Shown one piece after another: positions 1 to 64,000 of a stretch of DNA of 64,000 bases. A program made the position numbers and the translations under genes. The notes under the pieces were generated by a model that made no database searches, was not told the DNA's origin, and was given only the letters and a program-made list of their open reading frames with translations. Every line of letters starts with the position of its first letter. Position 1 is the first letter of the stretch. The DNA lies in the sequence record MT708547.1. One strand, 5' to 3'.

Positions 1-9
1 TAAAATATT

Positions 10-586
10 ATGGATAAATTACACAAAGCAGTATTATTTTTAAAAGCATATAGCTATGAGTACTTACAAAGTCATGGAAAATGGAATGGTAGTTATAAGG
101 ATTTATATTCATCTGTTTTTCTTAATGAAGTAAATCTTGTGATATCAGAAGTACAAAAATTATATGAAAGAAAACTTGTGCATACGAGATTTGGTATTGG
201 AATTATTATTAGTATATTTTGCTTCACATACGGTTCCTTTTTAGTCGCAATAGAAACAATAGTAGAAGGCAAACCACAAACAATAGTATTAAAATTAAGT
301 GAGATATATCTGGATGAATGAACATTTTAATAGAATACAATTAATCACCCAACTTCTACAAATGGTTGATGACACATTTGATGAATTAAAAAATAATCTT
401 ATGAATAAGAAAATCAAATGTAAGGTATATATGAATGATGGTGATTATTTCGATATGCGTGAAGTTGAAGTAACTGGAATTGTTACTAATATTACTTTGT
501 ATGAATATGATCTAACTATTACAGTGAAAATCGACGAAGGTCGTGAATATTACGTTTGTAATCAACATATTGAGGTGGTTGAATGA
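10..586 (+). CDS. Two short hypothetical proteins (10-321, 299-586), members of a small helix+beta paralog family
   Basis: ORF track; co-directional overlapping ORFs; no recognisable catalytic motif. Confidence 0.55.
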
Positions 587-1728
587 GTTTAGTAGAAATC
601 TATAATGATTTAATGAATTTAGTACAAAATAATGAAGCATTTGAATATAAAGATCAGCGTTCAATTGGCGGTGGTTTGTATAGAATCTTTTCTTATCGAA
701 TGGCCTCATATACTGATTTCTGTGAACCTAATGCCAAAGAAACACGAGGATCAATGTGGGAAATCAATGAAGATGGCACTATGATTCGTTGTGCGGCACG
801 TACTATGAATAAATTTTTTAACGCATATGAAAACCCATTCACAATGTTTGATAAAAATATGCTTAGTACTGAAATTGAAGTGGCGATGGATAAACGAGAC
901 GGTTCTATTATCAGTACTTTCAAGGATAATGACGGAATTATTCGTTGTAAATCTCACACTTCTCTATCTTCAGAACACGCAATTAATAGTAATGCTATCA
1001 TGCGTCCTGGTTCTAGTTTATATCAATACGTAGAAGAAGCTGAACTTCAACAATATACCGTGAACCTCGAATATACTTCACCTGAATATCGTATTGTATT
1101 GCCATATCAGAGCGAGAAACTGACTGTATTGAACGTTCGTCATCGAATCACTGGTGAACTACTGTGTGGTGAAAAACTGCGTCAGAAGTTTCCTATGCTC
1201 GCTATGCGTAGCACTAATATGATAAATGGTCAGAACATTGCAAGTAATTTTCCAATGCGTACTACAGTACTTGAAACTGTGGAAGCAGTAAAAGGAATGC
1301 GAGACATTGAAGGATTTGTAGCAGTACTGAAAGATGGCACAATGTTTAAAATTAAAACAGATTGGTACTGTGCTTTGCATTTCAATAAGGATAGTATTAA
1401 TGTTGATTCTAGACTTTACGAATCAGTGCTACAAGGTGCAAGTGATGATTTAAGGCAAATGTTCTCTAATGATCAGTATTGTCTTGATAAGATTAAAAGG
1501 ATGGAAGATTTAGTATTCAGTACTTATAATTCTTTTGAAAAATTTGTTAATGATTTTTACAATGAATTTAAACATTTAGAACGCAAAGAATATGCACTAA
1601 AAGTACAGAAACTTCTACCAAAAGAATTAAATCATCAGGGTTATGCTTTCTCTTTGTATAACAATAAACCGTTTGATTTAAAGGAAAACATGATCAAATA
1701 CAGCAAAGAAGTATTAAAAGATTTCTAA
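583..1728 (+). CDS. rnlA: RNA ligase 1 (T4 RnlA-like)
   Basis: Nucleotidyltransferase motif I KRDGS, ETRG and MNKFFN, IEGFV and MFKIKTDWY motifs; 381 aa matches the T4 Rnl1 size class. Confidence 0.92.
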   Translation: MSLVEIYNDLMNLVQNNEAFEYKDQRSIGGGLYRIFSYRMASYTDFCEPNAKETRGSMWEINEDGTMIRCAARTMNKFFNAYENPFTMFDKNMLSTEIEVAMDKRDGSIISTFKDNDGIIRCKSHTSLSSEHAINSNAIMRPGSSLYQYVEEAELQQYTVNLEYTSPEYRIVLPYQSEKLTVLNVRHRITGELLCGEKLRQKFPMLAMRSTNMINGQNIASNFPMRTTVLETVEAVKGMRDIEGFVAVLKDGTMFKIKTDWYCALHFNKDSINVDSRLYESVLQGASDDLRQMFSNDQYCLDKIKRMEDLVFSTYNSFEKFVNDFYNEFKHLERKEYALKVQKLLPKELNHQGYAFSLYNNKPFDLKENMIKYSKEVLKDF

Positions 1729-1740
1729 TAAGGACACCAA

Positions 1741-2904: not shown

Positions 2905-2915
2905 AGGACATAATA

Positions 2916-3860
2916 ATGCCAACAATCACATTAACAGTTGGACTTCCCGGATGTGGCAAGACTACATGGGCTGTTGAAGAAGTTCGAAGATCTAAAAGTA
3001 AAACAGTAAACATCAACCGTGATGATATGCGAGAAAGCATGGCTGGTTCTCATGAGAATTATAAGTTCAAAGATGATAATGAGAAGTACATAGACGCTAT
3101 GCAAATTGCAGCAGCAGATACAGCAGCAAAGAATAAGTGGAATATTATTATTTCAGATACCAACCTAAAGTTATCTATCCGAAAGAAATGGAAAGATTGG
3201 GCTAAAGCCAATGGCTATGATTACAAAGAAAAGAATTTCTTTGATGACTTTGTAGCAAAAAGTACTTCAGGTGCAGATGTTCATCAGTACTTTAAAATTA
3301 AAGAATTTGTAAAACAATGCAAAGACTATAATTTACTTCGCTACAAATCAGTACCGGAATCGGTAATTGATACAATGGCTGATTCTTATTTGTATAGTAC
3401 TATGCCAGTTCCTTCTATTCAGAAAGATTCGATGTATGATTTTAATACTGAATATATCATTGTTGATATTGATGGTACTTTAGCACATAGGGGAAATCGC
3501 AACCCATATGATGAAAGTACTGTACTGGAAGATACACCAGATCTTGAAGTTATTCGTTCAGTACTGGCTGAAGTGAACCATCATAAACGAAAGGTTATTA
3601 TCATGAGTGGTCGTCATGAAACTTGTGCAAAAGACACTCGTTTGTGGCTTCATGAAAATGGAGTTCCATTTGAATATCTTTTTATGCGTTCAGAAAATGA
3701 TAATCGCCCTGATGATGTGGTAAAATATGAATTGTACATGAAACATGTTGCACCATATTATAATGTTGTTAAAGTTTATGATGACCGACAACAAGTGTGT
3801 ACGATGTGGCGTAAATTGCTGAAATTGAAAGTTTTTCAAGTTGATTTTGGTAATTTTTGA
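2916..3860 (+). CDS. pseT: Polynucleotide 5'-kinase/3'-phosphatase (T4 PseT/Pnkp)
   Basis: N-terminal P-loop GLPGCGKTT plus NRDDMR; C-terminal HAD motifs DIDGTLA, SGR, DDR. Confidence 0.93.
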   Translation: MPTITLTVGLPGCGKTTWAVEEVRRSKSKTVNINRDDMRESMAGSHENYKFKDDNEKYIDAMQIAAADTAAKNKWNIIISDTNLKLSIRKKWKDWAKANGYDYKEKNFFDDFVAKSTSGADVHQYFKIKEFVKQCKDYNLLRYKSVPESVIDTMADSYLYSTMPVPSIQKDSMYDFNTEYIIVDIDGTLAHRGNRNPYDESTVLEDTPDLEVIRSVLAEVNHHKRKVIIMSGRHETCAKDTRLWLHENGVPFEYLFMRSENDNRPDDVVKYELYMKHVAPYYNVVKVYDDRQQVCTMWRKLLKLKVFQVDFGNF

Positions 3861-3868
3861 TAATTATT

Positions 3869-3900
3869 GAAGGGGAACACTTGATCCCCTTCTTTTCTTT
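3869..3900 (+). terminator. Intrinsic terminator after pseT
   Basis: GAAGGGGA-acacttga-TCCCCTTC followed by a T-run. Confidence 0.75.
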
Positions 3901-3971
3901 TGTTAAAATAGAAATACAAATAGAAAAATAACATTTATCTAGATTCAGTAGTTGGGCTTGGGGATAAGAAA

Positions 3972-6348
3972 ATGAGACAATTTTATGAACACTGGAAAAT
4001 GTTATTTAATAGTACAGAGTTGTTGTACTGGAATAGATATTATTCCGGTTGTATCAATGAATTGTATAATCATTTTTTATATGAAGCTACTTCATCATTA
4101 AAAGGACAAACAGTTCAACACAACGTACTCGGCGAATGTAGAATTACAAGAGTTTATTCTTTTTATGATGATGAATTATTTTGTACAATATATTCGAATT
4201 TATACAGAATGGATGTAAAATTGCGAGATTTAATTTAATGAATTTATTAGAATGTATAAAATTTACTAAATTTTTAGATTCAGTGAATGATCGTATGTTT
4301 GAGGAATTTTGTGATAATACTGAATATTTAAATATAGTAATGGGTATTTTTCATAAACATTTAAATGGGTATATTGATGAACTGAATAAAAAACTAAAAA
4401 ACAGAGAACTTTTCGTGTATGGTTTAGGTTATTGTGTAATTTATGATGTTTATCGTTCGATACATGGTGAATTAAAATGTACAGTAACATTTGAAAATGA
4501 ATATCATAATGTCTATATGAAATACTCAAAACTTGTATGAATAAAATAAAATCACTTGATATTGCTTATACCCTATTTTATATCAAAGATCATATAGATG
4601 ACTCTTTTTACAAAGTTATAGTCGATTATACAGAGAATTTAATACAAGAACTTAACACAATACTTATAGGTAGTAGTTGTATTGTTAAACCATCTGGTGT
4701 TGAATTCAAAGCTACAATTGATTCAATATTGTTTAGTTCTATTTCTGGTTTAGTATATAAAGTAACTGAAAATACTAAATCATTTTATAGTTATCGTTAT
4801 GTTAATCCATTAAAAATTGAGTTCTTATGAAATCACTCAAAGAAGATATTAATTTCAAATTGTTATCAGTACTGAAAGAACATACTTTTAGTAACCCACT
4901 TTGTCAAGATTTACTTAATTCAATATATTATAATAAAATTACCAAATATGTTGATAATAAATGTTATTTTATTCATGACGAAGAAAAATTATACTCAACC
5001 ATAAATGGGTTTTTTGTATCAAAAAACGGTGATGTTTTATGTTATTTGTATCATAATAAAACATACAATTTTATAGAATTAAAGGATGTATATATTGAAT
5101 AGTATTCAGGATGATATAGAAAGGAGAATATACTTCATTATAGTGTGTTATAAAAGAAAATACACTACACAGTACTATAATTTCTGGAATGCAAGATTAA
5201 ATTTGGAAATTAAAAACATATTATACTACCAGAGGATATTGTAATGGATTCTTATTTAGATGAATTAATTATTGATTTACTAGTTTCTTCAGTACTATCA
5301 CGTCGCGGTGAACAAAAAGAACGCAAATACAATAAAGAAAAATTTGATGATTATTTGCGTGATTTTCTGGAAAGATTCAAATGAATCAACATCAAGATTA
5401 CAAATATCATAAGCTGCTTGATGAATTCACCGAAAACATAAAAATGTATGGGGTGCTAAAACAGATAGCAACAAAACATAAAACAGGAGACTATTTCAAT
5501 AAAAGATGTAATTCAATTATAAAGAGATTTGTTACAGAAAGTAATTTTATTATTAAAGGAAAATAATTTATGGATATTGATGATACGTATTTGTATAATC
5601 TTGAATTAGTGAGAGTTGGTGTATTATTGACCACTTATTATACTAACTACAAATGTATTAATTCTGTTATAAATTCTATACTTGATTCATGGGTATATTA
5701 TAGTTCCAGATTACTATAATGATTAATTTAAATTTAAGTTACAAAACACATAACTTCGAAAGTATAAAATTTGATGAATAAAATAAATGACGCATATCAT
5801 ACTTGGGAAATGCTTTTTGACTTAACTGATGATTTTTATCCAAGTAACTATTCAAATGTTTATTATGAAGTATATAAAAATTATTATTCAGAACTTAATA
5901 ATTATGTCAAAGGAACTAAAGTTGAACTTATATTATTATATTCAGTGAGTCCTTCAAAACTAGGAACTGTTAATTCAATAAATGTGACACCATTTGGATT
6001 ACACTTTGAAATAGAACTGTGTCATAATTCAGTAATCGTTTTCCGTGAATATTGTGAAATAAAAGAATGTTAATATGTGGGGTTATCATGAATTTAAAAA
6101 CTGATATAGAATATTTCAATTTACTTATGTCATTAGTAAATGAACAATTGGAGCACATGAATAATACTTATAAAAATACCAATGTATTAATAGATTCACA
6201 TAAAAAGAATTTATATGATGAAGAGGGAAATATTTTATTATTTGATATTTCGGATAAAGACTCTACATTAATGATAAGTGTTCAGTACAGTAACAGTTGG
6301 TTTGGTCATTTAAACTCGGAATATCATGATTTTGTGATCAAAAAATAA
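3972..6348 (+). CDS. Array of short hypothetical ORFs (3972-4238, 4181-4540, 4537-4830, 4827-5102, 5244-5384 by hand, 5381-5566, 5771-6073, 6067-6348)
   Basis: ORF track, overlapping start/stop codons; several share a helix then LKxxxV...G...I..I pattern. Confidence 0.55.
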
Positions 6349-26665: not shown

Positions 26666-26690
26666 AGTACTGTAATATAATTACAGTACT
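26666..26690. repeat. Perfect inverted repeat AGTACTGTAAT-ata-ATTACAGTACT
   Basis: Read directly; carries two AGTACT sites. Confidence 0.8.
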
Positions 26691-36087: not shown

Positions 36088-37959
36088 TTATGCCCTTAAT
36101 CTTGCGTTAATAATTCGGCTTGCAGAGTCAATAGCTGTTAATGTGACGGTTAGTGTGGTGCCATCCGCAGAGATAGCAAAAGCCAGAGAAACCCCGGTTG
36201 GAGAAGCAGAAGCGATCCCCCACGTCCCACTACCAAGGGTAGAGAAAGTTCTAACAGAAGCCGTATCTACCGCTAAAGCAGCCGACGCTTGCTCACGAGA
36301 GATAATTAAGTTGACAGAGTAATACGCAACTGCTCCTGTATTTGTATTATTACGCACTCTAAATTCCAGAGTACGAACAAGCAAATCAGCGGTGTACCGT
36401 GAAAAGGTCTGTGATGTCGTTGTGAAAGTTAGGGTTGCGGTGCTGCCCGCTCCAGATAGCGACAGGGATGACACGGCATCACCGAGGTATTGCACACCAT
36501 TACTAATGCGGCGAAGACCGAAATTCTTCTCATCTTCCACGCCAGAGCAACCGAGCACTGATAACGCCTTAACCAATCCCGAGCGTAGCCATGATGACCC
36601 TGTATAGCCTGATAGGTTGGATGCTGAAGCCCGGAAACTTTTCTCATCAGAAGAGCTACCGCCAGTGGCTAGTATATATGTTGGTGATTGTCTACCTGAA
36701 CCATCATCGTTTGCACCTGTAGTGGTAAAAACTGCGGTTTGTATTATAGAAGAACCATCACCTTCGATATAATAGTGAGCATCCTCCGCACTACCCTCAG
36801 TTGCCAATCTTCCTGAACGCTGCACTGCTACACCAGAAAGGGTAAACTGGGCCCCACCAGTGGCAGCTACTGCACGTTTACCAGCTCGGTCTATCAACTC
36901 ACCCTGAATCAGGATTCGCTTACACCCATATCCAAAATAGTTATCACCATTATTCCATTCGTTTCTGACACCAATGAATGAGTTATTATTTGCCCCAGTC
37001 ATCAGCTCAACACCATGGTTACGATTGGCATTAATGTTCGTCCCTATGAACAGAGAGTCGATAACGTTACGTACACCTATGGTATTGCTCGCAATTGAAC
37101 AGTCAAGCACTCTAATACCTGCCGTATAGCCAGTGGAGCTTGACCCACCAACACCTATAGACCATCTATAAAAGCCACACCTGTAGTATTGGCAATTTTG
37201 AGTCTGGTCGGACCCAATCCCTCTCATAAAAGGGATGGATCTATCGCGGCCATCAAAACTGATATTAAAAAATCTATGACTGTTCGTTAGAATGAAGATA
37301 GATGGTGAACCGGATGCAAGCCTTAAAACCGTCCCTTTATTATTGAATGACGCATCTGAATACGCTGTGTATGGCCTGAATGAAACTCCAGTCATAGAAA
37401 AGCCAGAAGGAAGAGTTACAGGAGAAGCTCCGAGAACATAAATTCCCTTTACTGGTGGGAAATGGAGTTCCATAACACCATCGTCGATGGCAGCTTGTAG
37501 GGCATAATCTACGACAACTTCTGTTCCTACAGTCCCTTTTATGGCTAATTGGTCTGTTTTGGTCATGTACGAAAAAATATTTGCCCGCACAACATCCCTA
37601 ACTGATGCCTGGCCAATATTAATCAACGAAGCACCTAACGTGGGTTCACTAGAGCTTAGGTTTTCTCGAAGAGTATCAACTGATTCAAAAATTTTTATTG
37701 TGTATGTTTGTATAGATGTGGTTATAATCATAGTGTCTTCATCTTGAATAACCCATGAATATATAGTACCAGTTTCATTACCATTAAGAGTCCAGATAGT
37801 TTCAGTACTTGTATCATATAGAAATTTTAGTCCAGAAATATCCAAACCATTGTCTAAGTATTGTACTTCTTCAATTTTGGAACCGGTTATTCTTGCAATA
37901 CTTTGTTTATTAGTTTCTTTTGATACTGAACCTTTCGGTTGAATTAAATTATTTGTCAT
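36088..37959 (-). CDS. Tail spike / capsule depolymerase (short QPKGS N-terminal anchor family)
   Basis: N-terminal about 90 aa shared with 40739 and 44195; pectin-lyase-like entry LQAAID...HFPP..G.Y, beta-helix composition. Confidence 0.85.
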   Translation of the reverse strand: MTNNLIQPKGSVSKETNKQSIARITGSKIEEVQYLDNGLDISGLKFLYDTSTETIWTLNGNETGTIYSWVIQDEDTMIITTSIQTYTIKIFESVDTLRENLSSSEPTLGASLINIGQASVRDVVRANIFSYMTKTDQLAIKGTVGTEVVVDYALQAAIDDGVMELHFPPVKGIYVLGASPVTLPSGFSMTGVSFRPYTAYSDASFNNKGTVLRLASGSPSIFILTNSHRFFNISFDGRDRSIPFMRGIGSDQTQNCQYYRCGFYRWSIGVGGSSSTGYTAGIRVLDCSIASNTIGVRNVIDSLFIGTNINANRNHGVELMTGANNNSFIGVRNEWNNGDNYFGYGCKRILIQGELIDRAGKRAVAATGGAQFTLSGVAVQRSGRLATEGSAEDAHYYIEGDGSSIIQTAVFTTTGANDDGSGRQSPTYILATGGSSSDEKSFRASASNLSGYTGSSWLRSGLVKALSVLGCSGVEDEKNFGLRRISNGVQYLGDAVSSLSLSGAGSTATLTFTTTSQTFSRYTADLLVRTLEFRVRNNTNTGAVAYYSVNLIISREQASAALAVDTASVRTFSTLGSGTWGIASASPTGVSLAFAISADGTTLTVTLTAIDSASRIINARLRA

Positions 37960-38020
37960 TTATAATTCTCCAAATATAATTATAATAATATTTATAATAA
38001 TATTTATAATAAAAAAAGCC
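37960..38020 (-). promoter_or_regulatory. Late promoter/RBS cassette with two TATAAATA boxes
   Basis: TATAAATA on - strand at 37989-96 and 38001-08; SD GGAG; near-identical to 44196-44244. Confidence 0.75.
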
Positions 38021-38171
38021 AGTTAACTCTGGTATTTCTAAACTACCTTATCTAAGTTATTTTTTTGAGTAGTAGAGATATAATCAAGAACCAAATTGTA
38101 AAGTTTTGAAAGAATATTATATAAAAGATAAAATTGATAAACTAATGATATATTTCATATTACTAGTACAT

Positions 38172-38200
38172 AAAAAGCCCTCAATTGAGGGCTTTTCTTT
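38172..38200 (-). terminator. Palindromic (bidirectional) terminator
   Basis: AAAAGCCCTCAATTGAGGGCTTTT. Confidence 0.75.
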
Positions 38201-38298
38201 TATTGCTTTACCTCTTTTGAAATTAAGGTACCAACTTAGTCAATTTAAGAGTTTATTACAATAGTAATAAGTCATAGTCAGTCTTGACCATATAAAGG

Positions 38299-38499
38299 TT
38301 ATCCGCCAAAAACAATCGAGCATTGATTAGCAGACTTTCCGACAGCAAATGTGTCGTACACTCGCTCAAGAATAACGCTGGTATCAGTTTCATCGGTGTC
38401 CAGCATCCCGGCCAGTTCTCCGTATGCTGTGCTCTCTTTGCTTGTCACGGTGTAAAAATCCGTCTCACCTTCAGTTAATTTATAAACGTACATAATCAC
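38299..38499 (-). CDS. Small protein coupled to 747-aa tail spike (possible accessory/chaperone)
   Basis: Start overlaps tail-spike stop; same GC-richer composition. Confidence 0.55.
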   Translation of the reverse strand: MIMYVYKLTEGETDFYTVTSKESTAYGELAGMLDTDETDTSVILERVYDTFAVGKSANQCSIVFGG

Positions 38500-40739
38500 T
38501 CCTTCCAGAACGCAGGTAGTCTAATTTTGTAAGAACCCTGAGCACCAACAAACGAAAGTGCGGGAACCACCACAATAGAGCCACCATATGATGCAACAGC
38601 CGACGCAGGCACGGATGCTGAACATTGCAGTGAAATCAGACCACTACCATCACCTCCCGAGGTAGAATAGTCTGCAACTTTTATATCGCTCCCATAAAGA
38701 GTTCCTATTTGAGTTGACAAATCTGATGCACGATAAATCTGAAGGCGAAGTGTAACAAATAGTTCGCCACTGGTAATGCCAGCCGGGTTCATCGTTATCG
38801 CCCCATAAACTATCTCTTCAGGGTTGTTGAGTGGAATACGTATGTTGGTATTCTGTATAATAAAACGTGCATCAGTTGATGTTGAAGAAACATTAACTTC
38901 CTGTGCTTGGGTGAATGTACTGGTGTCCGATGTGTCGATATTACCATACACGATGGTCAGGGCTGCATCGTTGTTAATAGTGGAGAACAACATTCTCGTT
39001 CCCGCATCTGTTGCACCTTTTAAGTTAGAACCTACATCCCCCGAAAAATTATATAGACCGAAGTTAAGAGAATGCTTGTAACTGGTCAGAGATGGTTCAG
39101 GAAATTTCAAGGTTCCTGTCCGTTTTAGTACAATTCTGTTCTGTGAACCAAGCTCAATAAGCGACAGGGATTTTGATGCGGTTTTACCTTTGAAATCAAT
39201 ATACATCCCGCCATCATAAATATAATCCGTGACATTTCCTCTATTTTTGAAAATAGGTGATCTAGGCATTTCAGTTATTGGTGAGTTAATACGTGGGAGT
39301 ATATAAGTTCCTTGGTTAAAAAATAAATGATTATGCAAATCCGCAGCCCAGGCACCGGATGGTTCAGCACTATATACGTAGTGACCAGCACCATACCCCT
39401 CTATCCAGCACTCATTGGTAAAAATAAACCGATTCCCTCGTCCGTAATAACTGAAACAAATAGCATCCCCACCATTGTAGTCAATACTGACACTGTCAAA
39501 AACAATACCAGCGGAGATTGCCCCCCAATATATACCATGGGATGTGTTATTACCAATAACACCATTGACAAAACGGATACGTTCTCCGCCGTTAGACACA
39601 TCAGCAATTGTATTTCCGAGGCCATAATAATTATATACAAAGTTGTAGTTACTAATGGTATTAAGGTATTGACTTTTTACAGTCATGTCAAAACCGTAAT
39701 AAAACCCACGGATTTTTATGTTATCTATCGTGTATCCTCGGATATTTAAAATATTTGATGATACCGTATTACCCTCCGAGTTACCGAAAAATACACCACT
39801 GGCAGTACTGGTAATGCCGTCGGCGGAAATACCTACGACCTCAATCTCGCCAGTCAGTGATCTGAAGCAGCCCTGGTGCTGATGCACTAGGAGGCCAATT
39901 GCCCATCCTGACAGACCATATGTCTGATAATAGTAGTAATTATCAACAGAAATGGCTTTACCACTATTACCTGCATATTTAAGTTCAGCATTTCCTTCAA
40001 ATTCGATTGAGAATAGAGAGCACACACGGAGAGTTGTATCCAGAGTCAGCGACAGTTTACTTCCAGTTTGGAACTTAGCGGGAATAGTGATTTTGGTATT
40101 ACCTGCCAGCATAGAGCCAGCCGAGATAATTTTCTGAACCTCTTTTGCCATTATATCATTCACTACAGTTGCAAAATTAGTTCCATCCACCTTAATACTT
40201 TCATGCATCCTAACATCTATCCCCCGGCTAACATCAGCTTTCCAGCGAGCACCATTGTTAGTAACGAAAACAGAATAGCCATCATCAGTTGTGGTGGTAT
40301 CACTAGCATCGTAAGTCAATACAGCATTAATTGTAGGCCCAGCTAGGTTGGACTGGTTTAGAACTATGGCCTGACCGTGGTTTGTTGGCTCTATGGTTCT
40401 AAGTTCAGCTATATTTTTACATCTACCAATTAACTTAAAACCATCACTTGCTCCTAAATTTGTTCTTAGATCTGCTAAAAGCAGATTATATGTCCCACTA
40501 CTGGTAATTAGTGTTAAAGTCTGTCCTGAAATACTCCAAGATATAGCTGATCCAGTAGCTAGTCCACGATACCAACAAGTTTGTGTATTTTCATCATATA
40601 AAATTGTATATGGATCTATAAGTACTGAAGTAGATAGATATTCTACCGAAGATTTTTTAATCCCAAAGATTCTAGCGATGGATTCTTTATTCGTCTCTCT
40701 TGATACTGATCCTTTTGGTTGTGTTAATTTGTTTGACAT
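38496..40739 (-). CDS. Tail spike / capsule depolymerase (QPKGS anchor family)
   Basis: Shared N-terminus MSNKLTQPKGSVSRETNKESIAR; GFKLIGRC..IAELRTIEP linker; beta-helix-like body. Confidence 0.85.
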   Translation of the reverse strand: MSNKLTQPKGSVSRETNKESIARIFGIKKSSVEYLSTSVLIDPYTILYDENTQTCWYRGLATGSAISWSISGQTLTLITSSGTYNLLLADLRTNLGASDGFKLIGRCKNIAELRTIEPTNHGQAIVLNQSNLAGPTINAVLTYDASDTTTTDDGYSVFVTNNGARWKADVSRGIDVRMHESIKVDGTNFATVVNDIMAKEVQKIISAGSMLAGNTKITIPAKFQTGSKLSLTLDTTLRVCSLFSIEFEGNAELKYAGNSGKAISVDNYYYYQTYGLSGWAIGLLVHQHQGCFRSLTGEIEVVGISADGITSTASGVFFGNSEGNTVSSNILNIRGYTIDNIKIRGFYYGFDMTVKSQYLNTISNYNFVYNYYGLGNTIADVSNGGERIRFVNGVIGNNTSHGIYWGAISAGIVFDSVSIDYNGGDAICFSYYGRGNRFIFTNECWIEGYGAGHYVYSAEPSGAWAADLHNHLFFNQGTYILPRINSPITEMPRSPIFKNRGNVTDYIYDGGMYIDFKGKTASKSLSLIELGSQNRIVLKRTGTLKFPEPSLTSYKHSLNFGLYNFSGDVGSNLKGATDAGTRMLFSTINNDAALTIVYGNIDTSDTSTFTQAQEVNVSSTSTDARFIIQNTNIRIPLNNPEEIVYGAITMNPAGITSGELFVTLRLQIYRASDLSTQIGTLYGSDIKVADYSTSGGDGSGLISLQCSASVPASAVASYGGSIVVVPALSFVGAQGSYKIRLPAFWKE

Positions 40740-40775
40740 ATTTATTCCTTAATAAATTGTAAACCTTACTTTTAT

Positions 40776-41600
40776 TTAATCTACAGCCTCTATTTCTATT
40801 GATACAGGGTATTTATCATCTGTAACATTAGATTGAGTACCATCTAAATTAACATCAAAGCCCAATGTATTTGTGGTACTATAAGTATTATCAACCAAGT
40901 CACCCGCATTGGTAATATAAAAAGGTAAGAAATTTTTATTACTAGCTGTAGATACAAAAGATGTGGAATTTGTAGAAACTGAAGGAACAGAATCTGTTCT
41001 TGTTGTTATACCGCCATTATTTGGTGTTTGTATATTTAGAATGTACTGTTGTTGGGTAGTAGATGATAAATTACAACGTAATGTTACTTTATATCTATGA
41101 TAAGATAGTAATCCAACAACACTTACAACAGAATTTTGCCCTTTAAAAAGAGTCCCTGTGATTTTACATTTCACACCAAGAGTTGTTACTATTGATTCAC
41201 CAGGGTATTCTGGATGAATAGTACTTGACCCATTTGGAATATCTGCAATAGCTAACCAAGGTCTTATTGTTAACGCTGTGGCCCCTGAATTTAACCAAAG
41301 TCCATCAATATTCTTATAATTCTCACATTTTAAATTAATATATCCAGTGGTGCCGGATTTTCGTACTGGTCTACACAGTTGAGAAGAAGACGTTATTGCA
41401 TTCGCCTCGAAACCATCATATCTAAATATTGTCCTGCCATTAATTTTTGCTTTATTTAAGGCTCATATTGCTGTACTATTTCCTCCAACTTCCCACCAAC
41501 CAGACATATCAATATCACAATTATATAAATTATCTGCCCTAGTTCCGTCCCCAACTTTAATCCCGACGTTCTGCATGGGTGCCTCGACTACAATGGATCA
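40776..41600 (-). pseudogene. C-terminal remnant of a tail spike
   Basis: Frame of ORF 40776-41174 stays open upstream to an in-frame TGA at 41463-65 and continues IVVEAPMQNVGIKVGDG...; no N-terminal anchor. Confidence 0.65.
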
Positions 41601-41967
41601 AGTAGAAATCTTCCTGATTGATGATGACAAATCTGTCCATTAACAAAGTCATCAAAATCACCGTTGATATTATCTGGGAGAATAAAACCAGATCCCATAT
41701 TGAATACCATATCTACAAGACAATCAAACTGACCATGAGTAAGGTTATGTCCATACTTGTTTACTTCAGCCTCTGCTTTAGCAAGGTCAGCATCAAGTAA
41801 TTGTTCAGCTCTGGTTTGTGAGATTGGTAAACCATGATAAACATCTGGCTCTGTGTGACCATAGCCTATAGTCCATGGTTTACCCCCAGTAGCTGGATCA
41901 GGGTATCACGTAACTTTAGCGATTCAAAATACTTAGTTACTTTTTTACCTTCATTGGAAATTTTCAT
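41588..41967 (-). pseudogene. Frameshifted, truncated GH24 (phage lysozyme) endolysin
   Basis: SD GAGG, MKISNEGKKVTKYFESLKLR, 1-nt frameshift at about 41906, YPDPATGGKPWTIGYGHT...QFDCLVDMVFNMG. Confidence 0.85.
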
Positions 41968-41981
41968 AGTTAATCCTCATT

Positions 41982-42003
41982 AAAAAGCCCCCGAAGGGGC
42001 TTT
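41982..42003 (-). terminator. Intrinsic terminator (UUCG loop on - strand)
   Basis: AAAGCCCC-TTCG-GGGGCTTTTT on - strand. Confidence 0.8.
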
Positions 42004-42006
42004 AAA

Positions 42007-42276
42007 TCAAATAGTTAAGGCATCAAAGACATCTCTTAAAGTTTGGTCTTCAATATAAGGTACTACCCGTTGGATGGTATCTACTTTAACCTTACCTGAA
42101 TCATATGCATCTTTAGATGCATAGATATCTAAGGAAACTTCCATGGAGTACTTAACTTCAGACGCCTCTTCAATTGTAATGGTATGCATAAAAATCTGAG
42201 CACCCACAACACAAATAAAAGCATCACTGATGGTCAAACCAGAATCAGTTGTAATAGCTTGAATTTTAGAAAGCAT
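42007..42276 (-). CDS. Small protein downstream of 634-aa tail spike (possible accessory/chaperone)
   Basis: SD AAGGGG, 14 nt after tail-spike stop; YASKDAYDSG motif. Confidence 0.6.
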   Translation of the reverse strand: MLSKIQAITTDSGLTISDAFICVVGAQIFMHTITIEEASEVKYSMEVSLDIYASKDAYDSGKVKVDTIQRVVPYIEDQTLRDVFDALTI

Positions 42277-42290
42277 TTTAATCCCCTTAC

Positions 42291-44195
42291 TTAGTATGTG
42301 CCTTTACCAATGATTGTAATAGAGTACGTACAATTGGCTGTGGCAGTTAATGTTATTGTCAGGTCGCCACCTGAAGTGATTTTAACTGCTGAGGATACCC
42401 CAACAGAAATCTCAGAACCCGCAGATCTAGGATTATCTATAGATTTAAGAGTAGTATTTGTAGTTGTATCATAAAATCCACAAAATACACCAGTAAATTT
42501 AGAAGTAACCCCAGCAGTTGAAATATCAATAATCACATCATAAGCCTGGTTTATTGCAGGTAATAATCCAGACAATGATATTGTTTGTGTTGATGCATTA
42601 GCGGTAATAGCACCAGTTGCACGTCTCCCCATTATACCCGTGTGCCGCCCAGATGAATTTATGGCCAACTGTGTTGCACCTCCAACATAATTAAATTTGT
42701 ACTCTGGTCTAAATGATGTAATACCATTTAAATGAATTAACTGGCGTAAGATGAGATCCTTTACACTATCCCCAGCAGATTGAGAAACAATTGCTAAACC
42801 TTGTTTTTCAAAAGTACCAGAATCATACCCAGTTACAGCAAGTGCTTCAGCATTACTACCTCGAAGTCGCATCAATCCTCGATATACTTGGCCGTCTATA
42901 AGTGGCTTCAAAGATTCAAATGCAGTAAACCCTGCCGTAGCAAAGTTAGGATCAGAAGGAGTTACAGGTGTAATGTAACTTTCATTAAAAAATGGGATAG
43001 TGGACGTATCAGTAATTGCCCCAGTCCCATTTTGTATTCGCCAGTGCCCAGCAGTACTCCAACTACCATTATTAGTAACGGTGCCATTACCCTCAAAATA
43101 TAATGTTTCAAAACCGTTCCTTGATCCGTTATTAAGTATCCACTGGACGCCAGCCGCACCAAAGAACGTAACCTGATTCCAGTCTGCATTATAAATTACA
43201 CACCCAGCCCCAACATCAAGACCCGTCTGACCTGGCAGGTTATTACTGATAACGTTACGTAAAGTGATGCCATGGAACGAACCATCACCACCATCTTTCC
43301 TAAATTTTATGTTGGTCTTGTTGTTCTCTAACCAGCCATCTTCAATAATATTAAATTCAGTAAAGATACCGGCTGCTGAACCATTTGAGAATGATAACCC
43401 ACCATCACCAAAGCGATAAGCGGCAAAATCAGATAAGCGGATACCAGTAATGCCCTGTAGCTTCCAGCCTTCCCCTACAAAATCATTGGCAGAGTACAGC
43501 GACATGCCTTGAAGGAATATGTTTGTAGGCCAACCAGAGGTTCCCTTAACATGGACTGCTGGTATATCCCCACCATCAAAAATAAGTTTGGTTGCAGTTT
43601 TACCATCGCCCAGAAGTGATGCTCCACGCCACAAAGACCCGGATGTAACAGCTGGAAATAAAGTCTCATCGTAAAGATAAGCATTCCCATTCTTAGGAGA
43701 AGGAAAATAAACAATCCCATTATATGTTTGTGCGTCAGCTAATGCTGCTTTTATTGCACTCGTATTATTTGTACCTTTAATGATTGTAAGAGTTCCATTC
43801 CCATTTCTGGAAACTGAAGAGTCCGGGATACCACCTGGGTAATCTGTAACTTTAAAGTATCTACGAGACCCTCCGATTAAATCAACCCCCATTCCAGGTT
43901 CTGTGGATTTTAGATTTTTAAAGATATCTAACAGCTTTAAAGAAAAATCCCCTTTTTCAGTAGTAATTTGCATTGAGTCCGTAGACCCTACCCAAGAAAT
44001 CACCGTACCTGATGCATCCCCACGATACCAACATGTTTGGGTGGTCTTATCATATAAGACTTTAAAAGTGTCTATAACCAAGCCAGTAGCTAAATAAGCA
44101 ACTTCACTTATTTCAATACCCAAGATACGAGCAATCGTTTGTCTATTTGTTTCTATTGCGGTTGAACCTTTAGGCTGAATTAACATACTTGCCAT
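42291..44195 (-). CDS. Tail spike / capsule depolymerase (QPKGS anchor family)
   Basis: Shared N-terminus; NNTSAIKAALADA...VYFP...Y pectin-lyase-like entry; beta-helix body. Confidence 0.85.
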   Translation of the reverse strand: MASMLIQPKGSTAIETNRQTIARILGIEISEVAYLATGLVIDTFKVLYDKTTQTCWYRGDASGTVISWVGSTDSMQITTEKGDFSLKLLDIFKNLKSTEPGMGVDLIGGSRRYFKVTDYPGGIPDSSVSRNGNGTLTIIKGTNNTSAIKAALADAQTYNGIVYFPSPKNGNAYLYDETLFPAVTSGSLWRGASLLGDGKTATKLIFDGGDIPAVHVKGTSGWPTNIFLQGMSLYSANDFVGEGWKLQGITGIRLSDFAAYRFGDGGLSFSNGSAAGIFTEFNIIEDGWLENNKTNIKFRKDGGDGSFHGITLRNVISNNLPGQTGLDVGAGCVIYNADWNQVTFFGAAGVQWILNNGSRNGFETLYFEGNGTVTNNGSWSTAGHWRIQNGTGAITDTSTIPFFNESYITPVTPSDPNFATAGFTAFESLKPLIDGQVYRGLMRLRGSNAEALAVTGYDSGTFEKQGLAIVSQSAGDSVKDLILRQLIHLNGITSFRPEYKFNYVGGATQLAINSSGRHTGIMGRRATGAITANASTQTISLSGLLPAINQAYDVIIDISTAGVTSKFTGVFCGFYDTTTNTTLKSIDNPRSAGSEISVGVSSAVKITSGGDLTITLTATANCTYSITIIGKGTY

Positions 44196-55182: not shown

Positions 55183-57828
55183 ATGTCTTTAATTCAACTT
55201 TCACCTAGTAATGGTGATTCATTATTAATAAATTCTGGTTCTTTTAGTACTGGAAAAATTATACGAACTAGAAATGAACTGGTATTTTACACCGATCAAT
55301 ATGGTAACAGCACCGGCTATCGCTGGTTAGGTAATTTACCTCATGTGATTAATGGTAATTCACCACAAACCGATGGTGGTATTTCAAGTACATCATGGGA
55401 ATCTTATATTACTGAAAATTTATATGATAAATTAAAATCAGAAAATATCACATTATCAGGTACAGCACATTTACCAACTGTTGAAGTTGCATATGGATTA
55501 CCAAAAGGTTCATTGAAAGTTTGGACTCCAGGTTCTACCAGTTCATCTTCTCAGTACTGGTTATATTCAGATGGAACTGTGTGGGGTGGTGTTGGGGTTT
55601 TGGGATCAGAACCAGATGTTCCATTCACACAATTACATTTACAACGAGATATTATAAAATATAATTACACAATTCCGTCTAATGGTACCACAACTATTTC
55701 TATACCCTATACATTCAGTTCAATTGAAGTTTATGTTAATGGTGTATTACAAGATTCAAATTCCTATTCGGTATCAGGTCAGTATATATTTTTTTCTTCT
55801 GAATTATTGCAGGGTGATATCATTCAAACATTTTTAAATGATGTTCCTATCAGTTCAGTCGATTATGCATTAAAAAGTGATTTATCTAACTATGCTACAA
55901 AAGATAATTTAATGAATTTTGAACAAGATATCAGTTCTAATTATGGTCTTACAATGATTGGACAATGTTCTGACATAAATGATATGAAATCGGTAGAGCC
56001 TATGATAAGTGGGCAACAAGTATATTTAATATCTCGTGTTAGTGGGTGGGAAGCAACATCTTCTGGTATGCCATGGGGCGGTGGTAAATTTCGTTATATT
56101 TCAAACCTCCCTGAAAATTTAAGAATTGATGATGGTGGTAGCATTATTAAAACCAATAATGGTAAATTTTGGGTAAGAGATGAATTATTCACAGGGCAGG
56201 GGGAAATACGGGTTGAATGGTATCTTGAAAACGCCCCATCATTTTTAAATGATGAAAGTGATGCATTACAAACCGCAGCTAATACTGCCCTGCTATGGTC
56301 TAAATATTCAGGATATAATAAAACAATACGCTTAATTATGCCACCAATTTTAACTATTAGTAAAACTATTAATATATATACTCGTGGTGTTCGTATTGAT
56401 GGTAATCATGGATATTGTAAAGTATTAAATACCGGAACTTATACTTTATATACTGATTTAAGTAGTAATGTAAATATAAAAAATACTCCTGATAATAATA
56501 TACCACCACGAGTAGTAATAAACATAACTCATGGTTCCGACGGCGGTGTATCTAACCCAGCATATTCGGATCAAGAAATTATAAAAGATTGGAATCTAGT
56601 ATTAGGAAATGTTGGAGATGATTTTAATCCAATTAATAAAACCGACAATGGAATAGTTGCATTTTGTCATTGGGGTACCAGTACTGTTGCCGCTGCCCAG
56701 TTTTCTATAAAAAATGTATCAGTGCAAGGGTTTGGTGTAGGATATATCAACGGTGATAATACTTGGGGTGGTAATTTTTATGAATGTAAATTCGTTGGAT
56801 GTTGGATTCCACTATGGTTAATCAACGGAGCCGATAATACCGAGCGTTACACTCTTTTTGGTTGCGTTATGCAGAACGGATACCGATGTGTATATTCTCC
56901 TTGGGGTGGGGATTTTAACATCGTTAAAGGCTCATATGTCTGGAATACTGGCCCGTATTTTGAGTTCCCGACTGCGAGTAATATGATAGAAATAAATCCA
57001 TCTAGAATTGAAATGGTTAATACATCAAACCCACTTCTTATAGTTGGAACCGCTATCGAAACCGGGGCAACATCCCAAACATTCCCGCTGGTAAAATTGC
57101 ATGGCTCAATGATCTTATTGGACGCGTCAACAGTTCAGCCTGCTAATTATTTATTCAGTGTGAGTAAATATTCCAAGTTAATCGTAGAGGACAATACTTG
57201 GTCACATAAAAATATGACCAATAACGCGAATTTGAAGCTCTTGAATCCTTCTGACACTGGCGGGAAAGTGATTTTCAGGAACAACACCTGCCGCGTTGGT
57301 ATATTCTCAGAAATGGCCCGTGACAGTAGATTGATGACAAGCAGGACGCCAGCAGGACGTATCAATGATATTACAATCGGCGGAGTTAATGCTGCAAAGG
57401 CGTCATACAGTGTAAATGGAGCAGCTCTGACTTTTACAGTAAACGAGACATCAACCAGCGGAACATTGACGCTGTTGTTGAGAGTCCCTGTGGACGTAGA
57501 TATGACAGACTGGGACAGCCTGTCATGGAAAGCAGTGTTCGCCAACTTAAACCTAACTGGAACGTGGACTATTAACTGCTTCGCGTCCGTAGCAGGCTCA
57601 TCATATCTGAACAACCGTATAGATCTCGGTTCAGTTACATTGAACTCGGTAACTGATATCAGTGATGTTTGCAGCAATAACGCTTACGGATTCAAGAAAA
57701 TACTGAAACGTGCAGATGGCGGGTGGGACCGCGTGCCAACAGAGGTATATTTTTATATTTCTGGTGGAAATTCCCAAACTGCTGGCGATACATTTACAAT
57801 CACTAGTCTTGGGCTGCTTGGGTACTAA
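55183..57828 (+). CDS. Tail spike / depolymerase (MSL anchor, 1 docking repeat)
   Basis: Shared N-terminus; ESDALQTAAN pectin-lyase-like entry; beta-helix. Confidence 0.85.
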   Translation: MSLIQLSPSNGDSLLINSGSFSTGKIIRTRNELVFYTDQYGNSTGYRWLGNLPHVINGNSPQTDGGISSTSWESYITENLYDKLKSENITLSGTAHLPTVEVAYGLPKGSLKVWTPGSTSSSSQYWLYSDGTVWGGVGVLGSEPDVPFTQLHLQRDIIKYNYTIPSNGTTTISIPYTFSSIEVYVNGVLQDSNSYSVSGQYIFFSSELLQGDIIQTFLNDVPISSVDYALKSDLSNYATKDNLMNFEQDISSNYGLTMIGQCSDINDMKSVEPMISGQQVYLISRVSGWEATSSGMPWGGGKFRYISNLPENLRIDDGGSIIKTNNGKFWVRDELFTGQGEIRVEWYLENAPSFLNDESDALQTAANTALLWSKYSGYNKTIRLIMPPILTISKTINIYTRGVRIDGNHGYCKVLNTGTYTLYTDLSSNVNIKNTPDNNIPPRVVINITHGSDGGVSNPAYSDQEIIKDWNLVLGNVGDDFNPINKTDNGIVAFCHWGTSTVAAAQFSIKNVSVQGFGVGYINGDNTWGGNFYECKFVGCWIPLWLINGADNTERYTLFGCVMQNGYRCVYSPWGGDFNIVKGSYVWNTGPYFEFPTASNMIEINPSRIEMVNTSNPLLIVGTAIETGATSQTFPLVKLHGSMILLDASTVQPANYLFSVSKYSKLIVEDNTWSHKNMTNNANLKLLNPSDTGGKVIFRNNTCRVGIFSEMARDSRLMTSRTPAGRINDITIGGVNAAKASYSVNGAALTFTVNETSTSGTLTLLLRVPVDVDMTDWDSLSWKAVFANLNLTGTWTINCFASVAGSSYLNNRIDLGSVTLNSVTDISDVCSNNAYGFKKILKRADGGWDRVPTEVYFYISGGNSQTAGDTFTITSLGLLGY

Positions 57829-59999: not shown

Positions 60000-60049
60000 C
60001 TACATTATGATATTATTACATCATTCTAAATCCATTTAAAAATCTTTTA

Positions 60050-60078
60050 TTGACAAAGGATCTATTTTAAGTTAAAAT
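60050..60078 (+). promoter_or_regulatory. Sigma70-type early promoter
   Basis: TTGACA-17 nt-TAAAAT. Confidence 0.75.
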
Positions 60079-60107
60079 GCAAAAATAACTATTTAAGAGA
60101 CTGAAAA

Positions 60108-61958: not shown

Positions 61959-63192
61959 TAATTTTTTAGAACAAAATATAGTTAAACATCTTGCAGGTTC
62001 AAATGCATATGGTACTAATACCCCTGAAAGTGATGTTGATTACAGGGGTATTTTTTTAGCATCAAAAGAATATATCATGACTCCCTTTTATAATGTAAAA
62101 GAAGTCACTGATTCTTCAGAAGAAGATACAAAATTTTATGAATTGAATCAGTACATGAAATTGTATCTGGATGCTAATCCAAACATTCTCGAAAGTTTAT
62201 GGGTAGATCCATCAGATATCGTTGATAGTACTGAATTTTATGATTATCTACGAAAACACAATGCTGATTTACTAAGTTCACGAATTGCATTTACTTATAC
62301 TGGTTATGCTTATAATCAGGTAACTCGTATGAAAAATCATCACGGTTGGATGGATAAAGAACGTACAGCAGAAAATAGATTAAATGAAATTATTTCTTTA
62401 TATCCATATGTTATCACAAAAGAATGGATGTATGATACGTTCCCAGATTATATAGTTGAACGCGTATTAAAAGATGTAATCTTATCAAACATGAACATTT
62501 CAATTGATTTTGAAAAATTAATGCGTGATACTTCATTACAACTGGTTTCTATTGTCCCACTGAAGCAATACCATTTTGTCAAATTAGTACATAATTACAG
62601 TACTGAAAAAGTTCTTGATCGTGATTTCAATTTACTGAATTACAATAATGGTTATGAATTAATTCACTACGGTGAAAATATTTTTGCTCTTGTAAAAAAT
62701 AAAAATGAGAGTACAATTAATTCTGATGGTACATTGCGTTATTTCAATAAAGAACGTAGTACTGAAGAATTGAAAACTTATCCTGAACTTATTATCAAAT
62801 TCAATAATAAAGAATGGACTGAAAATTCTGATAACAGAAAGAACTATCACAAATGGAAGAAAAATCGTAACACTAAGCGTTCTATTATGGAAATGCAATC
62901 AGGTTATGATCGAAAATTTGCAATGCATACTATCAGATTATTGAACACCGCTGAAGAAGCGTTGGAAAGTGGTATTATTCATGTCAAACGTCCAGATGCA
63001 CAATTTTTATTGGATATCAGAAATGGTAAGTACACCTATGAAGAGATCATGGAAATGTATAATACCAAACAACACAATATCCGAGAAGTTCTGTACAAAA
63101 AATCAGTACTACCAAAGAAACCGAATATCAAATTAGCTACCAAGATTTTACTTGATATTCGTGAAATGCAATTTTATGGCAAAAAATCTTAA
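61936..63192 (+). CDS. Pol-beta-superfamily nucleotidyltransferase (RlaP / predicted NTase family)
   Basis: LAGSNAYGTNTPESDVDYRGIF, ELNQY, NPNILE, YDRKFAMHTIRLL, LLDIRNG. Confidence 0.85.
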   Translation: MKKNMGNNNFLEQNIVKHLAGSNAYGTNTPESDVDYRGIFLASKEYIMTPFYNVKEVTDSSEEDTKFYELNQYMKLYLDANPNILESLWVDPSDIVDSTEFYDYLRKHNADLLSSRIAFTYTGYAYNQVTRMKNHHGWMDKERTAENRLNEIISLYPYVITKEWMYDTFPDYIVERVLKDVILSNMNISIDFEKLMRDTSLQLVSIVPLKQYHFVKLVHNYSTEKVLDRDFNLLNYNNGYELIHYGENIFALVKNKNESTINSDGTLRYFNKERSTEELKTYPELIIKFNNKEWTENSDNRKNYHKWKKNRNTKRSIMEMQSGYDRKFAMHTIRLLNTAEEALESGIIHVKRPDAQFLLDIRNGKYTYEEIMEMYNTKQHNIREVLYKKSVLPKKPNIKLATKILLDIREMQFYGKKS

Positions 63193-63209
63193 CACAAAGA
63201 GGTAATTAT

Positions 63210-63674
63210 ATGAGCAACTATTCAGAGTATAAACAAAAAGAAATTGAATTGAAAGAAATGGTGAAAACCGTTGGCAAAGAACTCATTCAAGAAATGTACG
63301 AACAGTTTTTTGAAAAGTACCCAGAAGTTAAATTTGTTAGTACCGTTGGTTATATCCCAGGGTTTAATGATGGTGATGCTTGTGAATTCACATCTGATAC
63401 TGAATTTAGTGGAGATTATGTTGAAAATCTTAGCGAAGAAAGTTTAGAAGATATGGTCATTGCATTTGGTGGTGAACCAGGTGAAGATGATTTGTTTGAT
63501 CTTGATACTGCGGAAAATCCAAACTGGAATTATCAACAATACAACGCCGCCGGGAAAGATGTGGACGTCGACCTTCTGGAAAAAGTATATGGTTATGATT
63601 GGATTGTTGTTGCTTATAAAGGTATTGATGGAACAGTTTCAATTGTTCAAGAGGATTATGATTGTGGATATTAA
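63210..63674 (+). CDS. Acidic hypothetical protein
   Basis: SD GAGG; KYP...GYIPGFNDGDACEF. Confidence 0.7.
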   Translation: MSNYSEYKQKEIELKEMVKTVGKELIQEMYEQFFEKYPEVKFVSTVGYIPGFNDGDACEFTSDTEFSGDYVENLSEESLEDMVIAFGGEPGEDDLFDLDTAENPNWNYQQYNAAGKDVDVDLLEKVYGYDWIVVAYKGIDGTVSIVQEDYDCGY

Positions 63675-64000
63675 TGCTATCGTTGAAAACATGAATGCAG
63701 AAATTGAAGAAGTACGTCAAAAATATGTAACTATATTTAATGATGATTTCAATATAGTATTACAAGCTATTAAAGACAAATATCCCGCACTCGAAGTTGT
63801 TTACATTCGTGCATGGACACCTCATTGGAACGACGGTGAAGAATGTAAACACAACATGTCTGTACACGTAGATAACAATGGTAAGTATACTGATATCGAA
63901 GAGTTTTTTGAATGTACTGAACGTAATTTTAATTGGGATGAAGCACCTGATTGTATTAAGAATGTCAACAAAGGCATAAGTACTAAAATGTCGAAAGAGA
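63664..64000 (+). CDS. Hypothetical protein, paralog of 63210 (runs off window)
   Basis: Read by hand from GTG 63664: ...KYPALEVVYIRAWTPHWNDGEECKH. Confidence 0.65.
   Translation, partial: MDINAIVENMNAEIEEVRQKYVTIFNDDFNIVLQAIKDKYPALEVVYIRAWTPHWNDGEECKHNMSVHVDNNGKYTDIEEFFECTERNFNWDEAPDCIKNVNKGISTKMSKE

Follow-up and report, generated by a model that had tools for sequence, protein, structure and literature searches.

Dispersed and promoter-paired copies of a 12-bp palindrome with an AGTACT core in the genome of Klebsiella phage Muenster

Why should a large phage genome accumulate one particular 6-bp palindrome, when phages generally avoid short palindromes? The question is raised by a stretch of 64,000 nt from Klebsiella phage Muenster (MT708547.1, positions 62001–126000; hereafter the window), in which an initial annotation, made from the sequence alone, had tallied about 150 copies of AGTACT where about 22 were expected. 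Muenster is a 346,937-bp Alcyoneusvirus, a RaK2-like jumbo myovirus, with K64-1, RaK2 and OU509535.1 as near relatives (97–98% identical); the 121Q/PBECO4 coliphages have only about 450 bp of detectable nucleotide similarity to the first 20 kb of the window. The window has a GC content of 32.0% and carries nucleotide-metabolism and NAD-salvage genes, many small genes of unknown function, and a tail-fibre/depolymerase block; the record annotation of positions 62001–126000, transferred to it, translates without internal stops, and its first 20 kb are 100% identical to Muenster 62001–82000. Beyond the window, the Muenster sequence was analysed to 326 kb (all but about 0.9 kb and the right-hand copy of the terminal repeat), with several genome-wide word counts (flanks, 12-mer and mismatch variants) covering 314 kb, and the coliphage used for comparison is the 121Q-like OR844650.1 (350 kb analysed).

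The excess is large and specific to this word. An exact count gives 152 AGTACT sites in the window against 21.7 expected from base composition only, in close agreement with the earlier tally, and dinucleotide-preserving shuffles (n=100) contain 14.85±3.74, with a maximum of 25. For the 141 sites in coding sequences (CDS), a per-gene synonymous-codon shuffle predicts 42.9±5.5 (z 17.8), and a third-base shuffle in which the 2-3 and 3-1 dinucleotides are preserved as well predicts 92.2±5.8 (z 8.4); permutation of codon order gives 23.7. Scored against synonymous shuffles, AGTACT heads the list of 4096 hexamers (z 14.9), and its own shifts CAGTAC and GTACTG come next. The next hexamer palindrome, CCATGG, is at 2.1x and many others are at 0, and the three palindromes that had been named as possible rivals lack enrichment in the window (TGTACA 0.9x, ACTAGT 0.6x, AGATCT 0.5x). 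A general enrichment of palindromes is ruled out, as all other hexamer palindromes are at or below about 2x.

The sites are not confined to any one reading frame or to genes. Density in the window is 2.2 per kb in intergenic DNA and 2.4 per kb in coding DNA, and the CDS sites comprise 84 read as AGT-ACT (frame 0), 15 as xAG-TAC-Txx (frame 1), and 42 as xxA-GTA-CTx (frame 2), with each frame 3–7x over the shuffle expectation. The coordinates, the three frames and the intergenic examples given in the initial annotation are all correct. The motif also leaves its mark on the proteins: no dipeptides in the window are more over-represented than Gln-Tyr (1.87x) and Ser-Thr (1.64x), and 84 of the 195 Ser-Thr pairs (43%) are spelled AGTACT, where codon usage predicts 13%. 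Because all frames and intergenic DNA are hit, and because the excess survives codon-preserving shuffles, the signal acts on DNA rather than on codons or amino acids. The three codon-preserving shuffles and the equal intergenic density rule out codon or dicodon bias as the cause and, with the first rank among hexamers, bear out the earlier suspicion that such bias is insufficient.

AGTACT is the core of a longer unit, the 12-bp palindrome TTCAGTACTGAA, of which there are 30 perfect copies in 314 kb of Muenster against 0.036 expected, four of them in the window. Of its shorter forms, CAGTACTG occurs 212 times against 2.7 expected (35 against 0.6 in the window), and TCAGTACTGA occurs 67 times against 0.31. 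Genome-wide, the flanks are -3T, -2T and -1C, mirrored by +6G, +7A and +8A, and the TTC flank is enriched 11x; within the window, C is common and G rare at -1, and G is common and C rare at +6. The frequent extension to CAGTACT or AGTACTG had been seen before and was understated, the flanks being symmetric to ±6 bp. The 12-mer tolerates changes by degrees, with 95 copies carrying one mismatch (1.3 expected) and 243 carrying two (21.6 expected), whereas the hexamer core within perfect flanks is nearly invariant (30 perfect copies, and no more than three for any one-off core). GTAC beyond AGTACT or its half-sites is near expectation, with 96 copies against 82.

The sites in the genome as a whole, of which there are 871 in 326 kb (835 against 106 expected in 314 kb), belong to two classes. 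The first is dispersed: outside the 20,030-bp terminal repeat there are 2.32 sites per kb in open reading frames (ORFs) and 2.54 per kb outside them, the density is alike in early, replication and structural genes, and spacing is near Poisson, with a mean of 429 bp and a coefficient of variation of 0.92. The second is found in the terminal repeat, whose 157 sites reach 4.8 per kb within ORFs and 14.9 per kb in the DNA between ORFs, and which contains nearly all of the 22 pairs that are spaced exactly 20 bp apart. The pairs have the consensus AAAAGTAC[TTGACA]-N9-cAGTAC[TG]tATAAT, in which the -35 element begins with the final T of site 1, and the final T of site 2 together with the following G forms the TG directly upstream of the -10 element. 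An unbiased scan finds 38 strong sigma-70-like promoter matches in the terminal repeat, 27 with AGTACT in the spacer and 12 with both sites; among 133 such matches outside the terminal repeat, seven have the spacer site and none has both. Palindromic sites thus hold fixed positions relative to the -35, spacer and -10 in a defined set of promoters, as would be expected for the operator pairs of a promoter-occluding repressor. None of the promoter-like sites in the window (12434, 13473, 22419, 26283, 60050) carries AGTACT, so that all of the window sites belong to the dispersed class. The initial annotation had overlooked both the 12-bp unit and the paired promoter component, which lies just outside the window.

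We note that the terminal repeat (Muenster 1–20030) encodes about 47 small genes, most of them with their own near-consensus sigma-70 promoter, and that the 5' leaders of many of these genes contain a GC-rich inverted repeat, e.g. gggaatgaataattcattccc.

The motif is maintained by selection. Coliphage OR844650.1 has 918 AGTACT sites against 119 expected in 350 kb (7.7x), shares the TTC..GAA flanks, and contains 16 perfect copies of the 12-mer as well as a dense early block at 300–330 kb; two genera whose nucleotide similarity is almost undetectable thus both keep the density at about 8x. The twin-site promoter layout is also present in RaK2, 121Q and other IMG/VR contigs of 345–371 kb, with unrelated spacer sequences. 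AGTACT is enriched in contigs with a major capsid protein 80% identical to that of Muenster, and the many relatives with 60–65% capsid identity show no enrichment. The Muenster and OU509535.1 genomes align over 288 kb with a divergence of 1.87%, and here 42 of 788 aligned AGTACT sites (5.3%) have changed, compared with 8.7% for all hexamers; per-base divergence is 1.16% within sites, compared with 2.25% for flanks of ±30 bp. The numbers of sites found in one genome only are balanced (42 and 44), such that gains equal losses, and the changes fall evenly over the site, with 16, 15 and 15 transitions at the three symmetric positions.

Over the longer distance between Muenster and the coliphage, a comparison of 259 orthologous genes (59,897 codons) places AGTACT at the identical aligned position for 102 of 421 Muenster sites (24%), where synonymous shuffling of both genomes leaves 6.4±2.5 and the baseline identity for any hexamer is 13.6%. 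AGTACT exceeds the hexamer baseline 1.6–3x in every identity bin of at least 30%; the sparse 20–30% bin has six sites, of which none is shared. Together, the divergence and ortholog-position results indicate that any one site is protected only weakly and that sites come and go, while both genera keep the same density; it is mainly density, not position, that is kept. The earlier proposal that a phage factor selects for the site gains from this maintenance, with half the substitution of the flanks and a density of about 8x in two genera; the C5-cytosine methyltransferase and Mom-like candidates for that factor lack support, as described below.

A few of the relatives with 60–65% capsid identity have other palindromes raised 4–8x (CAGCTG, CAATTG). 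In the capsid-gene regions (60–61% identity) of three IMG/VR loci, counts over expectation are 23/3.7 and 18/2.3 for CAGCTG, 27/6.2 for CAATTG, and 24/6.2 for TTGCAA, and separate lineages may each have their own iterated palindrome.

What, then, are the sites for? We tentatively favour, at somewhat short of an even chance, the explanation that a dimeric factor peculiar to the RaK2/121Q clade, binding DNA in a sequence-specific manner, recognises TTCAGTACTGAA, with AGTACT as the core of its site. The 12-bp symmetry, the graded flank tolerance and the exact 20-bp pairing argue for operators of a dimeric protein, and the combination of a 12-bp unit with fixed promoter pairs favours such a protein over a methylation mark; since 20 bp is about two helical turns, both sites of a pair would lie on the same face of the helix. 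At the early promoters, where two copies 20 bp apart lie over the -35 and in the spacer before the -10, we infer that the bound factor would occlude the host sigma-70 RNA polymerase and serve as a shut-off switch for the early genes. The roughly 700 further copies, about one per 430 bp and in all genes irrespective of function or strand, would be retained by weak selection on overall density, and would make the whole chromosome a preferred substrate for the factor, whether to coat or organise the DNA, to serve as a reservoir, or to mark the DNA as self. In a bolder form, which we consider doubtful, the RaK2/121Q phages would carry a self 'barcode' of about 900 copies of TTCAGTACTGAA, read by a phage protein of a type not yet recognised, which would shut off the host-takeover genes through the twin sites and coat, organise or protect the chromosome through the dispersed ones; along with the absence of GCGC (see below), this would amount to discrimination of self from non-self by composition and not by base modification.

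Several points weigh against a dimeric operator-binding factor. The purpose of the dispersed sites is its weakest part: in 326 kb of Muenster they show no helical phasing, regular spacing or preference for gene starts or ends, no link to any local function is apparent, and the same density pattern would also arise from a non-adaptive drive. A core this strict would fit a methyltransferase, nuclease or other enzyme as well. The reader and its function are deduced from sequence patterns, and no reader was found: Pfam scans of about 330 small ORFs show no helix-turn-helix, ribbon-helix-helix, TetR or similar DNA-binding domain, and of gp004, gp137 and gp011 only the last is left as a binding protein for the operator pairs, as a weak candidate. 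The only conserved early candidate is gp011 (Muenster 5709–6209, in the terminal repeat), a putative nucleoid-type protein with an H-NS N-terminal domain (E 1.3e-5) and with homologues in the dense early regions of the coliphage (314769–315233) and other clade members; it appears weak as a reader, and to our knowledge H-NS-type proteins do not read 12-bp palindromes. The AlphaFold2 model of gp011 (confidence score, pLDDT, of 76) predicts a small beta-hairpin/helix domain after a long helix, and Foldseek returned no significant match to the model in the PDB.

A gene for an H-NS/StpA-like protein with an N-terminal oligomerisation domain is present in the early region of every clade member checked. 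The C-terminal part of the gp011 family resembles the H-NS DNA-binding domain, with the loop GTKGNKG or SGN and not TGQGRTP.

Other gene products were considered and set aside. Both gp004 (sigma-region-4-like in the annotators' HHpred) and gp137 (an AP2-like 'DNA binding protein') lack conservation in the coliphage, and gp489, encoded beside the phage sigma factor, is conserved and has no recognisable DNA-binding domain. No cognate AGTACT methyltransferase or nuclease, as for a ScaI-type restriction-modification target, is annotated in 326 kb of Muenster. A search for an orphan methyltransferase, as the initial annotation had proposed, yields two conserved enzymes, of which one is unsupported and one is a candidate. 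The unsupported one, gp435, is a C5-cytosine methyltransferase that aligns end to end with the DNMT3A/B catalytic domains, which suggests a CpG-type enzyme; AGTACT contains no CpG, and among the loci of gp435 homologues only RaK2-type contigs are AGTACT-enriched, the other 67 scored loci being depleted, as for all palindromes. RaK2 DNA is reported to have methylated CpG (PMC3622015). The second, gp138, is a predicted 172-aa Dam-family adenine methyltransferase (PF05869, E 4e-28), 68% identical in the coliphage, and would be the best candidate for a modification model. Its gene (Muenster 56069–56587) appears to have been exchanged, as the product is only 69% identical to the RaK2 copy although the genomes are about 98% identical. 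The Mom-like gp390 is absent from the motif-bearing coliphage and has homologues elsewhere in phages without the motif. The Vsr-fold gp277, considered as a source of very-short-patch drive, belongs to a five-copy family of EDxHD/Hef homing endonucleases, and the neighbour words that such drive should deplete are undepleted. The five paralogues lie at window positions 19616–20623 and at Muenster 141793–143796, 241828–243456, 245879–247612 and 265772–267481; one EDxHD endonuclease gene is situated between two topoisomerase II subunit genes, and gp277 has four DUF7487 repeats. The known boxes for LexA, ArgR and Cra appear not to fit in half-site arrangement or spacing.

The motif had been thought undescribed in such phages, and we found no prior description in the RaK2 paper, the CBB paper (with its list of three promoter types in the group) or text searches of the literature, whose coverage does not extend to subscription journals (e.g. 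the GAP32 paper).

The array is reminiscent of several known systems. HIP1 (GCGATCGC; Elhai 2015, PMC4390886) is likewise a short perfect palindrome, present in hundreds to thousands of copies within genes (in every frame) and in intergenic DNA, conserved among related genomes, and without a consensus function for decades; the Muenster motif shares with it an abundance far over expectation, an occurrence in all frames and intergenic DNA beyond codon usage, and positional conservation. HIP1 differs in being a GC-rich 8-mer of bacterial chromosomes with two orphan methyltransferases that read inner sequences, whereas the phage motif is an AT-rich 12-mer with a 6-bp core, also occupies fixed promoter positions, and has a cognate methyltransferase only as a candidate. 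The Dam/GATC system, with SeqA and methylation-sensitive promoters, similarly combines a palindromic site used genome-wide with special spacings at particular promoters or origins, and Muenster encodes a Dam-family enzyme, but GATC is not many-fold enriched in those genomes and is below expectation here. Uptake sequences (USS/DUS), Chi and KOPS are density-dependent genome-wide words that occur within genes and bias peptide composition; these are asymmetric and orientation-dependent and have known readers, while a palindrome has no direction. With motif and flanks both symmetric, an oriented role of the Chi or KOPS kind is impossible, and the Chi-like recombination signal suggested in the initial annotation can be dismissed.

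A different parallel, to the promoter pairs, is provided by SPO1, a large phage of lytic habit whose terminal repeat carries host-takeover genes behind many strong host-type early promoters. TF1 of SPO1 is an abundant phage DNA-binding protein that acts over these early promoters and turns them down, and is thus alike in being a phage protein acting on terminal-repeat early promoters. TF1 is of the HU type, recognises and bends hydroxymethyluracil DNA with no strict palindrome, and its sites are not scattered through genes. No HU or IHF homologue is annotated in Muenster or emerges from the Pfam scans of small ORFs.

If the sites are instead a modification target, a phage enzyme would modify AGTACT or the inner GTAC, and the modified site would be selected for early-promoter regulation or as a self mark, with gp138 as the most plausible enzyme and HIP1 as the parallel. 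Conservation of gp138 in a coliphage that shares the motif is in keeping with this, as is the enzyme-like strictness of the hexamer core; RaK2 DNA is reported to be resistant to many restriction enzymes (PMC3622015), HIP1 has been linked to orphan methyltransferases that read the internal GATC and CGATCG (PMC4390886), and a study of giant-virus methylomes treats AGTACT among the methylated or targeted sites, in mollivirus sibericum (PMC7253447). Yet gp138, annotated by homology to the phage T1 Dam, should read GATC, which is unenriched (0.79x and 0.55x), and methyltransferases rarely prefer bases 3 bp outside their site, as the 11-fold TTC..GAA flanks would require. The DNMT3-like gp435 suggests a CpG type, the Mom-like enzyme is missing from the coliphage, and GTAC on its own is near expectation; we think a modification target unlikely. 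Less likely again is a site for a DNA-processing enzyme acting as a symmetric dimer, such as a T4-type topoisomerase II with a 4-bp stagger around GTAC, a nicking or recombination nuclease, or a replication factor, in which case the density would aid replication, decatenation or recombination of the 346-kb chromosome. A uniform Poisson-like scatter over every gene class fits a need for sites everywhere, the strict symmetric core surrounds a central 4-bp GTAC, and among the gene products of the phage are topoisomerase II subunits, nucleases of the gp46/47 and endonuclease VII types, and many homing endonucleases. This reading leaves the exact paired placement at early promoters unexplained, and the Vsr-fold proteins are multi-copy EDxHD homing endonucleases with long asymmetric targets. 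Furthermore, we know of no such sequence preference in these enzyme families.

We regard it as improbable that the sites are functionless by-products of biased mutation or repair, through very-short-patch-type correction or biased gene conversion. Such a drive would account for a uniform Poisson-like density that does not differ between core and accessory genes and drops only in recent acquisitions, and the genome does have Vsr-fold nucleases and a 5-methylcytosine (m5C) methyltransferase. However, the deamination neighbours AGTATT and AATACT are undepleted (ratio 0.98–1.12), there is no hot position, changes being even over the three symmetric positions, and the single C of AGTACT lies outside CpG, the likely target of the only m5C enzyme; the fixed 20-bp promoter pairs and the flank preference to ±6 bp are also left unexplained. 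Very improbable, lastly, is a host protein conserved in the Enterobacterales that reads the site, with the phage genome as a sponge or platform. The lead is SlmA, binding of which would disturb host division, and whose E. coli site GTGAGTACTCAC (Tonthat et al. 2011, PMC3020112) is also a 12-bp palindrome with the same central AGTACT and a dimeric TetR-type reader. The motif is identical in Klebsiella and E. coli phages, and the negative outcome of the search for a phage-encoded reader would also be in accord with a host factor. Although the phage motif matches the core of the SlmA site (A4 G5 Y6 / R7 C8 T9), it does not match the outer positions G1, T2 and purine 3 that SlmA needs (PMC3020112), which are depleted in the phage: G is at -3 in 13% of sites, C at -1 in 42% and G at -1 in 8%, the GTG flank is at 0.31x, and the full match GTRAGTACTYAC occurs only twice in 314 kb. 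If anything, the phage seems to avoid true SlmA sites. SlmA sites number tens per chromosome, compared with about 900 in the 346 kb of the phage.

A clade of 345–371 kb phages enriches one palindrome, and has done so until nucleotide similarity between its genera nearly vanished and at a visible cost in protein sequence, which implies an abundant reader of DNA sequence with a genome-wide role, together with a simple handle on early control in the form of two sites per promoter. Phages of this clade are being explored for use in therapy against Klebsiella and E. coli, and lack a known function for more than half of their genes; a defined 12-bp bait brings at least one gene function within direct test. 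The role of highly iterated palindromes, a question of long standing, also gains a second system, and one more accessible to experiment.

The sites and stretches of the window referred to above are collected in Table 1. The intergenic pair at 26666..26690 has no TTGACA and is not of the promoter-pair type.

Table 1. AGTACT sites, perfect 12-bp palindromes and a site-poor stretch in the window (window coordinates; a dot marks features given without a strand).
Feature	Position	Strand	Context
AGTACT array, dispersed	1..64000	.	152 sites: 141 in CDS, 11 between genes
Example site, frame 0 (Ser-Thr, AGT ACT)	865..870	+	in RNA ligase gene
Example site, frame 2 (xxA GTA CTx, Val-Leu)	1323..1328	+	in RNA ligase gene
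Example site, frame 1 (xAG TAC Txx, Gln/Lys/Glu-Tyr)	3286..3291	+	in PseT-like kinase gene
Intergenic site tttAGTACTgaa	14244..14249	.	between ClpP gene and its terminator
Intergenic pair, 19 bp apart	26666..26690	.	after gene ending 26654, before terminator-like hairpin
Further intergenic sites	5171, 15077, 18521, 30876, 30983, 41220, 45009, 49085	.	
Perfect TTCAGTACTGAA	13302..13313	.	
Perfect TTCAGTACTGAA	23333..23344	.	
Perfect TTCAGTACTGAA	28377..28388	.	
Perfect TTCAGTACTGAA	30414..30425	.	
Low-density stretch	36088..44195	-	three tail-fibre/depolymerase genes, GC 40-43%, only 1, 2, 1 sites

The density of sites in the window is uneven in one respect. The whole tail-fibre block (36088–59968) has 1.47 sites per kb, compared with 2.97 per kb in 1–35700, and the GC-rich depolymerase genes have 0.5–0.9 per kb. 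The genes of the low-density stretch stand out against surroundings of about 31% GC and have the opposite GC skew; these GC-rich tail-fibre/depolymerase genes are probably recent acquisitions in which the motif has yet to accumulate.

Other short words depart from expectation in these genomes. GCGC is wholly absent from both phages, with 0 copies against 208 expected in Muenster (1–326000) and 0 against 293 in OR844650.1 (1–350000), and the window has no copies of AGCGCT, GGCGCC, TGCGCA, CGCGCG or GCGCGC. This loss could reflect a GCGC-specific nuclease of the host or the phage. The initial annotation had remarked that the AGTACT enrichment is the opposite of the usual avoidance of palindromes, and the contrast holds within the genome itself, where GC-rich palindromes are at 0 and GCGC is missing. 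The E. coli Chi sequence GCTGGTGG occurs 12 times on the (+) strand and three times on the (-) strand in 314 kb of Muenster, where fewer than one is expected, and 12 and 16 times in 350 kb of the coliphage; TGGTGG is among the most over-represented hexamers of the window, and the excess of Chi and TGGTGG may be a codon effect (TGG/GGT).

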